A DNA stretch of 64,000 nt from Camelus dromedarius (lineage: Eukaryota), in the NCBI RefSeq assembly GCF_036321535.1, contig NC_087454.1:19158001-19222000 (forward strand), written 5' to 3'. Shown in pieces: positions 24,532-46,201 of the stretch. Position 1 is the first letter of the stretch, and the number at the start of each line of letters is the position of its first letter. The position numbers and the translations under genes are program-made. The notes beneath the pieces are model-generated. The model saw only the letters and a program-made list of their open reading frames with translations, was not told the DNA's origin and ran no database searches.

Positions 24532-25677
24532 ATCTAGCAATATCCTGGGTAAAGGGTGTCCTGCTAATTCAGAAGGGTGGGCATCCGATTATCATAACTA
24601 AAGTATAATATTTGTTAAGCCATCCAGTTTCCATTTCTCTGATTCTCTACTCACCAACTCTGAACTGCTACTTTCTCAAATTTCTGGTGTCTGGAAAGAA
24701 AATGAACTAACTGGAAAACAACAAATTTCATCTTGCTTGGCAATCACAATTCCCATTAAATTCATAAATTTGCTTTCTGATTTAACAATGAGTGCTGGAG
24801 AATATCTATTTGAGAGAAGGTCAGTTTGCTTACCCCCGAGTGAATCCAAACATTGGGAAGGTCTTGCTGGAGTGACAGAAAGTGACAAAATACAGAGCTG
24901 GAAGAGACATGAGAGACTACCACCCTCCATTCTCTGACTTCCTTCTCCTCACCCTGCTCACCTCAGCCAGGCTAGGTGTCCCCACTCTGTCCACACCTGC
25001 ACATACCTTTATCATAACCCTTACTATTTTATTATTCGTTTTTAAAGTGATCTATGCCATTAATTATAAACCAGCTAAGGGCAGAGACTTCTCTTTATTC
25101 ACCCCCAGTAACTAACAATGCCTGGCACACAGGAGGTTCTCAAAACTAAGCTTCTAATACAAATAAATTGGATGGTGCAAGTTAGACTTTTAGGGCCCGG
25201 TTAGCAGTTCCCTGATAAAGGTACGAATGGAAAATAAAAGACCATATAGTGACATACAGCAATCTCATCAAGCTAACCTTGAAGTTTGGGAGCAGGGGGA
25301 ATGGAAGAGGCAGATTAGAACAATTCCGAATTCACCATCATTGCTCAACCCAGGGCTTCCCAAGTGGGAAATCTAACATTTATGAAACATCTAATATATG
25401 CTAATGTTTCACAAAAATGAAATCCTCCCATAAATGTTATGAACTATGATTCCCACTTTACAGATTAGAAATAAGCATCAGAAAGGATAAGCAACTTGAA
25501 CAAACACAAGGCGACTAAAAATAGCCAAGCTAGTTTTAAAGTCCAGACCTATCTGACATTTCTGTATCAGACATAAATGGGAATAGTCACTGAACCTTGT
25601 GGAAGAAAACTAGCATTGAAAAAAAAAAAAGGTTCATTTAAGAGACATGGCTTCATCATAAAAGCACGGAAACTCCA

Positions 25678-26427
25678 CTAATCTTTTATTTTTCCTATTT
25701 GACTTCTCAAGAAGCGTGGCATAGTTAAGAATTTTCTTTGATATGGTTTGATATCTGTATTCTCTTCTTCTCTATTCTGAGGCTTTTCCATAAGAATATT
25801 CACTTTAATCCGACTGCTACTGCATGGCTGGAAAAGTGGATATGTAATAATGCTTTCAAACTCTTTTATCTCTTTCTTTCCTCTCTCAAGCTTCTCACGT
25901 GTAGGCGGCTGGCTCTGGGCTTTTCTCAAGACTTTTTCCTGGAGTTTTTTTCTACAAGTTCTCTGCCTCGAATCATGTGCTCCTGGTGATCTTTAATTTG
26001 CATCTGTTCCCTCTCATTTACCTGCCTTCTTCTCTGTGAGTTCTGGATGCCTTGCTTTTCTGGCACAATTTTGGGGAATTTTATTCCACTAGGGCGTTGT
26101 GGTAATGGCCTAAATTTTTTATTCTTAAACTCTCTGACCTGTCCTACTCAATGTATGTGCCTTTCTATGTGTTTCATTTCTCTCTCAGGTACCAAATAAT
26201 ACCGTTTTTGTCTCTCTGCGCTTTGGGTTGTTTCCCCCTCTAATCTCTTCTTGATTTCGTTGCCTGTCTCTTGTTCTTCCATCACTTCTTTTATTATAGT
26301 AAGACTCCGCTTTGGCAAGCCAGTAGTCAGGAGAAAGCGCTTGCTCCCTACAGAGTGCTTCCCGCTCCTCTTGATATTTTTGAATTATCAGTTGTCTTGC
26401 TGATGTTGTATGCATGCCACCTCAGTT
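25678..26427 (-). pseudogene. POLR1HASP: ZNRD1-AS1/POLR1HASP orthologue, last exon, disrupted
   Basis: Translated pieces ETTQS..YYLVPEREMKHIERHIH, NSQRRRQVNEREQMQIKDHQEHMIRGREL and KEIKEFESIITYPLFQPCSSSRIKVNILMEK..PYQRKFLTMPRFLRSQIGKIKD* closely match the recalled human putative ZNRD1-AS1 protein. Lesions: TGA 26422-26424, frameshift near 26286, TGA 26148-26150, and a 1-nt deficit in the A-run 25945-25951. Confidence 0.88.
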
Positions 26428-26822
26428 CTGCCAAAGTGAGGGACAGGATTTTATGATGTGACTGTCTTTTTACTTTGAACACATTTAAATAGGAGCTTAT
26501 CTTCATTATTGACACCAAGAAAGGACACATGATCTTTCATTTACTTTGGAGTAAGTAATAGTGATTTTGATTCCATCATTCCTAGGGGAGCCTGCGAGGC
26601 TCTGAAAGTAGGAGTACCCACTACCAAAATAACAGTTTTTGAAAAACATAGTGTTGGGAGTTTTAAAAATAATACTTTGCTTTGCAAGTAAAGATTTAGC
26701 TAGAAAACATCTGTCAGTGTGGACACACTACCAGAAGGTGTCACTTGGGCAAAAGGATTTTAAACCTAACTTTCCTTCTCCTAGTTGTCTCAAACTGTAT
26801 GATGTGAAGATAATTTATTTAC

Positions 26823-26898
26823 CAAGATTTTCTTCTCCAGTGGGGACTGCTGACCTGCAGCAATCCTGGGATCTTTAGATACTTTAGCCCAAGCCAAT
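26823..26898 (-). pseudogene. POLR1HASP: ZNRD1-AS1/POLR1HASP orthologue, 76-nt middle exon (LAWAKVSKDPRIAAGQQSPLEKKIL, open)
   Basis: tttttaatcttacag|A TTG GCT...ATC TTG|gtaaat. Phase 2 in, phase 0 out, consistent with both neighbouring exons. Confidence 0.75.
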
Positions 26899-27142
26899 CT
26901 GTAAGATTAAAAAGCAAAGGTAGATTAGAATGTGGGAGATACCAGAACAAATTTGATTACAGACTGACTGAACCAAAACACCCAATTGTTTTGGCCAAGG
27001 CCAAGGGTATGTCCCTCAAAAACAGAAAACCTGATAATAAGCAGGACTACAGCAGGGCCAGTCCCAATGGGAAACCACTGCATTCTTATGGTGAAGAATA
27101 ATAAATGCTCCTTTAATAAGAACATATAAATAAGAGCATATA

Positions 27143-27523
27143 CAGTCATCCCTCAGTGTCTGCAGACTACCCCCTAACATACCTTGGTTCCAGGATCACT
27201 TCCAGATACCAAAATTCATGCACTAGTCCCTTATATAAAATGACATAATAATTGCATATAACCTGGGCACAGACTCCTGTATAACTGAAATTATCTCTCA
27301 ATTAATTATAATACCTACCACAATGTAAAATTATGTTAATAGTTTGTAAATATAATGTAAATAGTTGTGAGTACAATGTGAATGCTATGTAAACAGTTGT
27401 CAGTGCATGGCAAATTCAAATTTTGCTTTTGGGAGACTTCTAGAATTTTGTTTTCCAAATATTTTCCACCCACAGTTGGTTGAATCCGTGGATGGAGAAC
27501 CCTCAGATACAGAGGGCCAACTT
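27143..27523 (+). mobile_element. MER2-like Tigger MITE in POLR1HASP intron
   Basis: Terminal inverted repeats CAGTCATCCCTCAGTGTCTG / CAGATACAGAGGGCCAACTT with TA flanks. Confidence 0.85.
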
Positions 27524-27552
27524 TAAGGCTTTCATATAAACTAAAAGCATAC

Positions 27553-27866
27553 TTCTCCTGTGAACTCAATGTGGACCATTCTGAGTCTTGTACCAGGGAC
27601 TGAGAGAGTGAAGAGACAGGCTCCTTGGAGATGCATTGCCCAAGCACATCTATGAGAGTATGCTGAGTCCCACAGCCTTCTTTGTCTCCTGAGATAATTC
27701 TCGACTTCAGTGTTATCAGTTCATCCCCCTTGTGCAGTTTCTTGAGCCGGGCCATCTCTGCCTCTATCAACACATATAGTATCTCTGCCCCATTATCTTT
27801 TGTTCTGAATTCTGTTCTTATTTGATCGCCCACCCCTCTGCTTGCCTGCCTTACTCTACCAATCAT
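27553..27866 (-). pseudogene. POLR1HASP: ZNRD1-AS1/POLR1HASP (Tctex4-type) orthologue, first coding exon (open, 104 codons + 2 nt)
   Basis: ATG 27866 lies 8 nt after a candidate acceptor (tttag|). Open frame MIGRVRQ...WSTLSSQEK. Phase-2 donor GAG AA|gtatgc fits the next exon. Confidence 0.65.
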
Positions 27867-28474
27867 CCTTCACCCTAAATCATTATGAGATCATTCCCCA
27901 TTGATATCCTGGGGATCAGAATTTGTAGTTACCCTAGGTTTATGTATAGGACAGGCTGATGGCAACACAAGTGGACTATCAACTTTTTGTGTGTCATCCC
28001 TGGTCTAAACTGAGTTTACTGTGAGGTCATAAATAAGCCACTAAGGATCTCTGGCATTTCATCTCTGTACTTTTGTTTATACTATTTATGGTTTGGAGCA
28101 TGGGCTTTGAAACCTAACAGGGCTATGCTTGAATCCTAATTCCACCACTTTCAAGGTGTGTGATTCAGGGCAAGTAACTTAATCTCTCTCTAAATCAGTT
28201 TCCTCAACTATAAAATGGAGATATAAGACAAAATTTCACCTCTTGGGGTTACAAAGAACAAATGAGATTACAGAGCCTGGCACAATGCTTGATAAAAGTT
28301 CTCAATAAATGTCAGTTGTCTATCCTCCACAGGTCACGCCCTTGCCTAGGAAGTCTTTCTAGTCTACTGTATGTAACACTGATTTCTGCCTTTCTATGAA
28401 CAGATTTTCTACTTCTGCAATTCATTTGAAAATTAGTCATAGTTTCCATTGTGATATCTGTATTCATATATCAC

Positions 28475-28604: not shown

Positions 28605-30029
28605 AGATATCAATTTTAATGTTTTGATGTTGAAATTCAGACTCATAAAAGAGTGGAGGCTATCATTTTTTTTATCTACAAATACAATGGTCTATCTATA
28701 ATATCAGAAAGGATCTGATACCAAATATTGGCTCTCACTGACCTCAGGCACATTCTTAATTGCCTATGTATACCTATTTTGAGATTTTTAAAAATGTAAC
28801 CACCTTACTTTTATTTGTCCATACGTAGTATCTAGCACAGTACTTAACATTAGAGTCTGTAATCCCATGTTCTCAAAAGAAATTATTTCTTGATTAGTGA
28901 TTAATTATCCTTATCATCTATCTGAGCATCTTTCCCTCTTACATTCCTGTATCATTTTATTAAAACATTTACCAGTCTTCCTTGAAGTATACAGGCGTAT
29001 TTGTTTTATATGCCTATCTTGGGCACTCACATTTTGTCCTATAAGTGTATACTTTCATTGTATTCTAATTAGTCACTTGTACTCCTTAATGTCAGAGAAC
29101 ACAGTTATCAGCTTTGCAGCTCCAACTTCTGCTCAAAGACTGGCACTGGTGCTTAATAAATACTAACTGAGCAGACTGTGAGCTTTTGTTGGGTAGGGCC
29201 ATGACTTCTAATGCTGTGTTCCTTAACTACATTAGGACAATATTCAACTCTGGGTTGATCTGCATTGAATTTTGTCAAACTTTAAAGGGAAAGTTGGGGA
29301 GAAAAGATGGTAATTTTCAATTTCCGCTTTCAAAGGAGACAGACACAGAGAAGTGAGAACAAAAACTTGCCTACCATCGTGGGCTCAGCAAAAGACCTCC
29401 CTTTCTAAGACAGACAACTTATTATGGGGCTTGTCACTCTCCAGCAGATTGCTCAAGAGTTTTAACCCCCTCACTGTTTGTCTTTCCATTCTTGCAGAGA
29501 AGCAGATCAAAGCCTCTCTCAAGGATAGATCACAGGTCGTTTCCTTTAAAGGAGAAACTAGTGATGGCTCCAGAACTTTGTTATGTTAGGAGTTTAGCAC
29601 AGCTATCTGGTTTAGTGGGGGCTGGAAAGACTGGGAGAGAACTAGGAAACTCATCCAGAAGCTATCCCTTCAGAACAAGTTTCTATTTTAGATTGTAGGT
29701 TACAGATGAGTTAAAATAGCAAGGTTTCTAAAAAATACTTGTCCTCATGTTTTATAAAAGATAGGGAAATGTCAGCTGCCCACCTAATGGATGACGGTGA
29801 TGATTTAGAGTTGGGCAGATGGGAGGCAGGGGACAAGGTGGATGGGGATCCGTAATTAAAAGCCAAACTCTACAAGTCTTATTGAAAGCCTACCCAAGGC
29901 TGCTTCCTTGACTAATGCTATCCTCCCTCAACCCGCAGACATTTAAGGAGGAAAAAGTCCCAAACTCTTCTGTTCTGCCACTTCCAAAGTCCTGAGGCCC
30001 TTCCCAAGTGTCCTACATCATCATTTCGT

Positions 30030-30830
30030 TCCTAGAGACTAGGCATTCCTCGTCCGCCTTCACCCTCACCACTTCCTGCCCCGTAAGAAGTCGACTCACT
30101 GCCCTTCCAAGGGCCCAGAACAGCCCCCACAGTACGCGAGCCAGGCCGGACTCTGCAGAGAGCCCCGCGAGGCCCAAGGAGCGCTAGAACTGTAAATTCC
30201 ACAATGTTCCGCTTTGTTTTTAACCACTGTCCAGCAGCTAATAAATTCGCTAGTTAGTACGATTTTTCAGGAGAACTGCCCCCCGTGACTACGTCCCTGT
30301 AAAATCCGAGACCAATAAAATAAACATCCCAGGACTGAGTCCTGCGGGGAAACGTAACGGAAGACGTAGCTTCGATCACGTTTTTTTATCAGACGTCACA
30401 GAGCCAGGCTGAAGGTGGCGTTACAAACTCCCTTCAAAGAGGTTCCTCTCCCTCTCTACGGACCACGTCTGCGATTAGTTATGACGTCACAGCCAATCGT
30501 GAGCCCGGACGCACAGACGCTCTAGCCCGCCAGGCGCTCACTGCTCCATCGCCGCGCAGAACTGGCGCTCTAGGCCGCCGCGTTGGTTGGCCTCGTTCGC
30601 CTGCTCCAGGAAAGGCCCCGACTTGTGGTATTCGAGGCGGGCTGGGAATTCCGGACCTTTGGGTTCCTTGGCCGCACAGGCAAAAAGCATGCTTGGGAGG
30701 ATGGCTCCGGTTCTGTATGCTTAGGTCCAGGGACAGAATAGGAGTGACCCTTCAGTGGGGAGGGGGCTACTCTCTTTCTTTTGTTAATAAATTTCTCATC
30801 CCCTGCGTAGCCTTCGACCACCGGTCCGTC
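30030..30830. promoter_or_regulatory. CpG-island bidirectional promoter of POLR1H and POLR1HASP
   Basis: CpG-rich. Full CRE TGACGTCA 30482-30489, CCAAT 30493-30497, minus-strand donor GCA|GTGAGT at 30099 (candidate antisense exon 1), POLR1H acceptor gcgtag| at 30810. Confidence 0.8.
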
Positions 30831-30966
30831 ATGGAGCTCGCCGGCACCTGCTCCAGCTTTCAGTCAGACCTGGATTTCTGTCCGGATTGCGGCTCGGTCC
30901 TGCCTCTGCCCGGAGCTCAGGACACGGTTACCTGTACTCGCTGTGGCTTTTCCATCAACGTGCGAG
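30831..30966 (+). CDS. POLR1H: POLR1H (ZNRD1, RPA12) first coding exon, N-terminal zinc ribbon
   Basis: MELAGTCSSFQSDLDFCPDCGSVLPLPGAQDTVTCTRCGFSINVR, donor G|gtgagg. The four exons total 372 nt (123 aa). Confidence 0.97.
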
Positions 30967-31210
30967 GTGAGGCGCTTGTACGCAGCGGCCCCGGCCGAGG
31001 GCCCAGCATGGAAGGGCCAGAGCCTGGGGGACTTCACGATCGGTAGTACTGAAGAGGGGGACCCTAAAGCAGAGGATCAGGCACCTATACTTTTGGTCTT
31101 GGGACGACATCTGAAGGGAGCAATATAAAGCCTCCTGGTCTAATCCAGGGAGTCGTGGGTGCCAGACCCCCTCTGCTTGTCTCAGCAACCAATTCTTACT
31201 GCCTGCGCAG

Positions 31211-31311
31211 ACTTTGAGGGGAAGATGGTGAAGACTTCATTTGTGTTCCGCAAACTGGGAACAGCCATGCCTGTATCAATGGAGGAAGGACCTGAATTCC
31301 AAGGACCCGTG
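31211..31311 (+). CDS. POLR1H: POLR1H second coding exon
   Basis: DFEGKMVKTSFVFRKLGTAMPVSMEEGPEFQGPV. gcgcag|...|gtaagt. Confidence 0.96.
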
Positions 31312-31508: not shown

Positions 31509-31618
31509 GTTGACAGGCGCTGCGCTCGATGTGGTCATGAGGGAATGGCTTACTACACCAGACAGATGCGCTCAGCGGATGAAGGGCAGACTGTCTTCTA
31601 CACCTGTACAAACTGCAA
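31509..31618 (+). CDS. POLR1H: POLR1H third coding exon, TFIIS-like C-terminal ribbon
   Basis: [37 protein letters not shown]. The RSADE acidic hairpin is intact. Confidence 0.97.
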
Positions 31619-31969
31619 GTGTGTATCCTTTCCCTTCTCTCTGCCCTTTCTCAGTCTGTTTGCTACCTGAACAAATCCAGCGATTTACTTTTTGTACTGC
31701 ATAAATCATTGTCTCCTTGGTCCCATCCCTCATTTCTGTACAGTTCAAGTTATAGGGAGATTTGTGGTCGTGGTTTTTTGTTTGTTTGTTTCTTGCCTTT
31801 TTTTACCCCCAAAGTTACACTTTTCTCTTTTCATACCTAGTCGTCTAAATCTTTTAGGATATTTAAAAGGAAATGAAAAAATACAGGAGGCAAGTGTTGT
31901 TCTTTGATCAGTACGTTACAGTGGAATCACCCACTACACTCAAGGTAGTTTTACTTGGATGAGAATTAG

Positions 31970-33535: not shown

Positions 33536-33560
33536 GTTCCAGGAGAAGGAAGACTCTTGA
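33536..33560 (+). CDS. POLR1H: POLR1H last exon (FQEKEDS*)
   Basis: cttcatag|G TTC CAG GAG AAG GAA GAC TCT TGA. Confidence 0.95.
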
Positions 33561-33800
33561 TTTTTTTCCTGAGCAACTCAACAATCCCTCCTTCTCCTTG
33601 GAAGGTGAAGGATATTGGGTTCTTAGGTCTTTGTCCACCTTCTGGTTGCACTGTTTTGCTCCCAGAGGAAAAGCATATTGTCATGTGGTGATTACCATTG
33701 TCCTCAGAGTACTCCTACCCTGGTTGAGTTTCCTTTTTAAAGTTTTATTTTTCTTTAGGAGCCAGACATATGTATGTTATTTATAACCTGTCTTATTCCA

Positions 33801-41354: not shown

Positions 41355-41497
41355 NNNNNNNNNNNNNNNNNNNNNNNNNNNNNNNNNNNNNNNNNNNNNN
41401 NNNNNNNNNNNNNNNNNNNNNNNNNNNNNNNNNNNNNNNNNNNNNNNNNNNNNNNNNNNNNNNNNNNNNNNNNNNNNNNNNNNNNNNNNNNNNNNNN
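41355..41497. other. Assembly gap (143 N) in RNF39 intron 3
   Basis: N run. No RNF39 coding exon is missing across it. Confidence 0.99.
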
Positions 41498-45704: not shown

Positions 45705-46201
45705 TGTTATAGTTAANNNNNNNNNNNNNNNNNNNNNNNNNNNNNNNNNNNNNNNNNNNNNNNNNNNNNNNNNNNNNNNNNNNNNNNNNNNNNNNNNNNN
45801 NNNNNNNNNNNNNNNNNNNNNNNNNNNNNNNNNNNNNNNNNNNNNNNNGAGGTTATTCTAGATTATCCAAGGGTCCTGAAAAGTGGAGGACAGATGCAGA
45901 AGAGGACAACCAGAGAAAGAGAGAAACAATGAGAAGCCCTCAGCCTGACATTGCTGGCTTTGAAGACTGAGGAAGAGGGGCCATGAGCAAAGGAGGTGTC
46001 AGTCTCTAGAAGCTGGAGAAGACAAGGAGATGGATTCTAGATGGAACCTAGCTCCACCGACACCTTGATTTTACCCTTGTAAGACCCAGTTCAGACTTCT
46101 GAACTGCAGAACTGTAAGATAATAAATGTGTGTTATTTCAAACATTTCAAACAAAAGTTTGTGATAATCTGTTACAGCAGAAAATAAGAAACTAATATAC
46201 A
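45705..46201 (+). mobile_element. MaLR LTR (MLT1D-like), spans a gap
   Basis: gctggctttgaagac..tctagaagctggaga..gaactgtaagataataaatgtgtgtt..gttacagcag..aactaatataca end. Confidence 0.8.
45717..45848. other. Assembly gap (132 N)
   Basis: N run. Confidence 0.99.

Follow-up and report, generated by a model that had tools for sequence, protein, structure and literature searches.

A three-exon frame divergent from POLR1H

The minus strand of the window (the whole 64-kb stretch of DNA that was analysed, to which all coordinates refer) carries three exons that splice into one interrupted protein frame, head-to-head with POLR1H. The first-pass annotation had proposed exons of 314, 76 and 750 nt, 1140 nt in total, with GT donors, AG acceptors and junction phases of 2 and then 0, and these we find as claimed. 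Exon 1 as first proposed runs from 27866 to 27553, starts with ATG and is directly followed by GT; its ancestral coding part is the 230 nt at 27553-27782, which end in phase 2 with the GT donor at 27552-27551. Exon 2 (26823-26898, 76 nt) is bounded by an AG acceptor and a GT donor and ends in phase 0. Exon 3 (25678-26427, 750 nt including the TAG at 25680-25678) is preceded by AG and contains four disabling lesions, such that it reads as a single frame only with read-through of two TGAs and with shifts near 26288 and in the A-run at 25951-25945.

Exact spliced mapping of intact orthologues gives exons of 230/76/756 nt in mole (Talpa), 230/76/753 nt in sloth (Choloepus) and 194/76/756 nt in hare (Lepus), where the coding sequence starts further in. 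With the conserved start position taken as the beginning, the window's exons measure 230/76/750 nt, and its exon 1 equals that of mole and sloth in donor as well as in length. The coding sequences of colugo (354 codons) and of a whale-like cetartiodactyl genomic contig, L012 (357 codons), are also intact throughout. Exon 1 shows 61–72% amino-acid identity to the colugo N-termini (P0002, P0029) and aligns to L012 with zero gap columns, while exon 2 measures 76 nt in mole, sloth, hare, colugo and L012 and is 92% identical to pig-like transcripts in which it is joined directly to exon 3. The translation of exon 1 retrieved, at 61% identity, a 242-aa colugo protein with the Pfam domain DUF5520, and this protein spans exactly the proposed junctions (...NPQE/KLAWAK...KKIL/NLGGVHTT).

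The initial estimate of about 380 codons for the ancestral gene proved too long. The ancestral coding sequence has about 352–357 codons, full-length relatives (352–358 residues) start with MLYVLIEAERA, and the 28 codons upstream of that point, counted from the ATG at 27866 (27783-27866, minus strand), form a lineage-specific extension that is open here only and is 5′ leader in other species. Because in-frame stops lie upstream of the conserved ATG in four other species (L012, Talpa, Choloepus and colugo), and because a 1-nt deletion in the window's own leader (between 27810 and 27809) puts the ATG at 27866 in frame, these first 28 codons are, as judged from the alignments, non-ancestral coding sequence.

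Orthology and gene family

In colugo, the locus L001 runs colinear with the window and has POLR1H (Zn_ribbon_TFIIS, PF01096) divergent from the DUF5520 gene; sloth (L008) and hare (L009) have POLR1H in the same divergent position. In the window, the sense exons of POLR1H, recognised via the pig-like transcript L003, are found on the plus strand at 30870-30966, 31211-31311, 31509-31620 and 33536-33567, with AG/GT boundaries. The window gene shares with this orthologue group the head-to-head arrangement with POLR1H, the exon lengths and phases, and its place in a protein tree (clade A, below). It lacks the full-length open reading frame of the group, and since it carries five lesions we class this copy as a pseudogene and not as a functional member.

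Whole-library searches with the C-terminal piece, then with the hare protein, returned more than 100 relatives. A closer tier, with 54–76% identity to the hare protein and from more than 50 mammals, bears the names ‘putative uncharacterized protein ZNRD1-AS1’, ‘RNA polymerase I subunit H, antisense’ and ‘Znrd1as protein’. A tree of 34 proteins contains two eutherian clades, A (POLR1H-linked) and B (C10orf120-type paralogue), the latter separate with 100/100 support, and the window pairs with L012 (support 99/98) inside clade A (100/99). The sister of clade A is dasyurid marsupials, and that of clade B is koala, which has a long branch. Pfam DUF5520 (PF17658, gathering threshold 32.9 bits) is passed in both clades and by a marsupial protein, the scores being 56–78 bits for the intact orthologues, the paralogue and the marsupial sequence searched. 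When the pieces of the window were searched apart, only 26421-26287 matched, at 24 bits (E 2.4e-5).

Set beside mammalian ZNRD1-AS1/Polr1has (Lepus XP_062043130.1, rat NP_001102949.1), the window has the same locus by POLR1H, the same three exons and phases, 66–87% amino-acid identity piece by piece and a place in the same clade; the frames are open there, however, for about 280–358 codons, whereas the window copy has lost its start and has two stops and two frameshifts. The C10orf120-type paralogue belongs to the same Pfam family, has the same length as ZNRD1-AS1/Polr1has and holds motifs in common with it (DSEW..LS.QE, DPRIA.G..SPLEKKI, ERE..H.ERM.RGREL, YPL.QP and PPFLRSQ), but its identity is only 38–44%, it is absent from the window, and in sloth, meerkat and ground squirrel it is apparently on another chromosome. 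In human testis, C10orf120 is reported to be differentially expressed in meiosis or spermiogenesis (PMC10158017).

The gene had been described as hidden, which is not the case: its protein is in NCBI and UniProt for more than 50 mammals (as ‘ZNRD1-AS1’ or ‘Polr1has’), and its family is in Pfam as DUF5520. The accompanying view of an ancestral three-exon coding gene, divergent from POLR1H and without characterised function, does hold. Literature on Tctex4, HTEX4 and Znrd1as yielded nothing on protein function. No solved structure of a relative came up in the PDB, where the sequences of the mouse protein and the bovine paralogue had chance matches only (E > 0.2). An AlphaFold2 model made for the donkey orthologue showed long helices and disorder, and at pTM 0.23 it was too poor for a fold search.

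Five mutations disrupt the frame

Alignment with five intact orthologues resolves four lesions in exon 3, all given here on the minus strand. At 26422-26424 a TGA replaces CTA (Leu). An 8-nt deletion between 26289 and 26288 then shifts the frame, the orthologues having AATAAAAGAATAATGGAAATGATG where the window has AATAAAA/GAAGTGATG; this is the frameshift previously placed near 26286. A second TGA, at 26148-26150, replaces CGA (Arg) by a CpG transition, at a site that is CAA in colugo. Finally, an A-run at 25945-25951 has lost 1 nt, from A8 to A7, with a further frameshift (the pig-like sequence has GAGAAAAAACTC, the window GAA-AAAAACTC). Each of these four lesions had been reported before, and in the DNA alignment none of the five intact orthologues shares any of them.

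A fifth lesion, absent from the first-pass annotation, lies in exon 1. The conserved initiator ATG (MLYVLIEAE...), present in L012, Talpa, Choloepus and colugo, is ATA in the window at 27780-27782 (minus strand), which on this comparison is a loss of the start codon. Near the C-terminus, a change of CCC to CGC at 25714-25716 (minus strand) turns the conserved PPFLRSQ into PRFLRSQ, at a position where eight of eight other aligned sequences have Pro. The orthologue alignments, and the dN/dS figures given below, omit 25997-26039, about 15 codons.

Only fragments of open frame remain, and these ORF fragments should not be annotated as genes. A search with the frameshifted 76-aa ORF gave no relative with the same out-of-frame tail, and nothing was on record for the 176-aa read-through ORF of exon 1.

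The lesions are present in independent reads

One alternative is that the lesions are assembly or sequencing errors and that the gene is intact in this species, and one lesion does sit in a homopolymer (A7), a classic error site. Read data, in which it had been suggested that the lesions be sought, argue strongly against this. The Logan contig L002, from a different run (SRR33129662), matches 26898-25651 gap-free and carries all four exon-3 lesions, differing from the window by one SNP, at 26098. Across 25600-27900, 12 DNA runs contain 100% of 244 sampled words, one of the 12 (X9) being unflagged as a possible source of the assembly, and over 25600-26427 five runs unflagged as assembly source, from three studies, contain 100% of 84 words. 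An 8-nt deletion and two substitutions are moreover atypical as error types, and we regard error as an extremely improbable explanation.

It could also be that the loss is not fixed and that the broken allele segregates as a polymorphic null beside intact ones. The recency of the loss as it appears from dN/dS (see below) and the one SNP between L002 and the window would fit with this. However, for one haplotype to have gathered five independent lesions implies a long period of neutral decay, and all DNA runs listed (at least nine samples, six studies) contain 98–100% of the words. Three protein searches likewise gave no intact close relative, at >90% identity, a result that is also weak evidence against an intact second copy in the genome. 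A segregating null thus seems very unlikely, and we take the lesions to be real.

The loss is private to the window's branch

In a codon tree the window is sister to (pig-like, (ruminant-like, whale-like)), that is, to Suina plus Ruminantia plus Whippomorpha, and a fully supported branch parts the cetartiodactyls including the window from mole, colugo, hare and sloth. This is where a camelid would be expected. A shared derived character places the window likewise outside ruminants plus whales: in ruminant-like and whale-like sequences (L010, L011, L012, P0102 and P0104) the ancestral TAG is gone and four residues, SVIS or LVLS, are added, whereas the window, the pig-like sequence and non-cetartiodactyls retain ...KIKD-stop.

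Exon 3 is open in the pig-like transcripts L003–L006, in ruminant-like L010 and in whale-like L011 and L012, and the protein models of peccary, vaquita and musk deer are uninterrupted over the C-terminal ∼200 residues. Since these other cetartiodactyl lineages keep exon 3 open, all five lesions are private to the window's branch, in accordance with the earlier proposal that the gene was inactivated independently in this lineage. Two further sequences, P0143 (ENA, ruminant-like) and P0144 (Logan, 11 contigs), have short ORFs with out-of-frame tails at sites other than the window's lesions, which suggests that the gene has been damaged separately in further lineages or that frameshifts are polymorphic there.

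Selection and the time of loss

To estimate dN/dS, pairwise Nei-Gojobori distances were fitted to a fixed tree, with no ancestral sequences involved. Among intact orthologues pairwise dN/dS is 0.35–0.57, which indicates moderate constraint. On the window branch it is 0.49 (bootstrap CI 0.29–0.90), compared with 0.45 for the rest of the tree, with P(dN/dS >= 1) = 0.016, and 4 of 61 strongly conserved columns are changed in the window, within the range of intact genes. Because dN/dS on this branch is not above background, the case for a pseudogene rests on the five lesions. Being near background, it also makes the loss look recent: the branch value is compatible with neutrality for anything from 0% to about 80% of the window branch, and the two stops and two frameshifts fit neutral evolution over roughly 15–30% of it. 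We infer, with a wide interval, that the loss is recent relative to the split from other cetartiodactyls, covering about 15–30% of the terminal branch.

DNA identity between the window and L012 is 0.86–0.92 in the exons, barely above the 0.85–0.87 of the introns, and for that reason conservation tracks alone would miss the gene. Its coding constraint is visible mainly in two ways: exons 1 and 2 lack indels, and dN/dS is near 0.45.

Transcription and the possibly shared promoter

RNA-seq runs from two studies contain 0.5–0.9 of the exon-3 words. The contig L002 begins exactly at the exon-2 acceptor, 26898, and retains intron 2; such a start would be expected if the assembly graph forked where a splice site is in use. 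Two alternative first exons of pig-like transcripts have homologues further upstream in the window, both on the minus strand and both with the GT donor kept. One, noncoding, at 30359-30436, corresponds to the 5′ ends of L004–L006, where it is spliced to exon 2, and the other, at 30870-30964, lies antisense over POLR1H exon 1 and corresponds to a part of L003 that is joined to exon 2. The upstream part of L003 is the reverse complement of POLR1H mRNA, an assembly merger across the overlapping first exons.

Around 30000-31000 a CpG island, with GC of 0.54–0.65 and a CpG observed/expected ratio of as much as 1.3, spans POLR1H exon 1 as well as the two candidate antisense first exons. Coding exon 1 (27866-27553) has no CpG island of its own, the island lying 2.5–3 kb upstream of it. 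The proposal that the gene shares the POLR1H promoter is accordingly plausible, on this sequence evidence, only for the isoforms with noncoding first exons seen in pig-like transcripts; the case for it does not reach the coding form or this species, and those transcripts skip coding exon 1.

These features bear on a further alternative, in which the full-length protein was lost and function was kept, either as an RNA that modulates POLR1H, transcribed from the bidirectional CpG island of POLR1H, or as a 131-residue N-terminal product of exons 1 and 2 that stops at the TGA at 26424-26422. Every splice site of the three exons is preserved, as is the donor of each upstream noncoding exon; exon 3 is present in RNA runs, dN/dS on the window branch is below 1, and the human orthologue is studied as a lncRNA regulating ZNRD1. 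After a recent loss, however, preserved splice sites and low dN/dS would be just as expected; it takes a chance 1-nt deletion to put the upstream ATG in frame, and coding exon 1 is skipped in the pig-like transcripts. Retained function of either kind therefore appears unlikely to us.

A probable unitary pseudogene

The reading that we consider highly probable is that the locus is a unitary, non-processed pseudogene of the POLR1H-antisense gene (ZNRD1-AS1/Znrd1as/Polr1has, DUF5520), its frame destroyed by five private mutations. As expected of a unitary pseudogene, the copy keeps its introns and its ancestral position, and its disabling mutations are verified in independent data. The gene dates at least to the therian ancestor, with three coding exons placed head-to-head with POLR1H, and its intact protein, without characterised function, is charged and about 353 residues long, with predicted long helices and disordered linkers. 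In this basal cetartiodactyl, camelid-compatible lineage, the start codon was lost and two TGAs, the 8-nt deletion and the 1-nt deletion were acquired. Since exon 3 is present in RNA-seq contigs, the locus is probably still transcribed and would now behave as a transcribed pseudogene or lncRNA, the maximal remaining product being, at most, the 131-residue N-terminal fragment from a fortuitous upstream ATG.

The human counterpart, POLR1HASP (ZNRD1ASP/ZNRD1-AS1), has the official name ‘POLR1H antisense, pseudogene’ (PMC12540707), in keeping with the earlier remark that the human locus is treated as a pseudogene or lncRNA; most of the literature treats it as a lncRNA. The gene of the window is thus regarded, in the human lineage, as a transcribed pseudogene or lncRNA (PMC12540707), and its lesions there are presumed to be different ones. 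Old World monkeys are intact (Papio, 358 aa; Rhinopithecus, 355 aa), so the human state would also be a lineage-specific loss, and by phylogeny, with intact monkeys and intact cetartiodactyls between them, the human and window losses would be independent. For the claim that the gene was lost more than once, the one basis here is the human gene's official name. A Gorilla protein (P0086, 298 aa) departs entirely from the consensus in its last 35 residues, after ...YPLFQPCGRSWIK, where baboon and snub-nosed monkey are intact; this tail is what a hominine-specific lesion, or alternative splicing in the gene model, would give.

As the human locus is officially a pseudogene, it was already accepted that the locus has a coding past. 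The novelty here is another inactivation confined to one lineage, with each of its lesions placed, and the locus itself is in all probability an ordinary unitary pseudogene of a gene that is known but lacks a characterised function. In the annotation of this genome, the ‘lncRNA’ next to POLR1H should carry the label of a unitary pseudogene of a conserved protein gene. As a second well-documented case in which one lineage lost the MHC-linked DUF5520 gene, it hints that the protein is dispensable or is backed up by its paralogue. With the function of the family still uncharacterised, this loss alone opens no new biology. A more far-reaching scenario, which we regard as unlikely, is that this ancient DUF5520 gene, probably spermatogenic, went from coding to transcribed noncoding independently in camelids and hominines within the last ∼10–20 million years, with transcription persisting in both (in the window, next to the CpG island of POLR1H), the RNA instead of the protein now under selection and C10orf120 covering the lost protein function.

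The public names of the paralogues ZNRD1-AS1 and C10orf120 are confused between species. POLR1H-linked orthologues are labelled ‘C10orf120 homolog’ in colugo, beaver, porcupine and Myotis, the other-chromosome paralogue is often called ‘ZNRD1-AS1’ in sloth, mouse lemur, rhino and cattle, and one POLR1H-linked orthologue is named ‘RNA polymerase I subunit H-like’. The window also contains two N runs, at 41355-41497 (143 bases) and 45717-45848 (132 bases).
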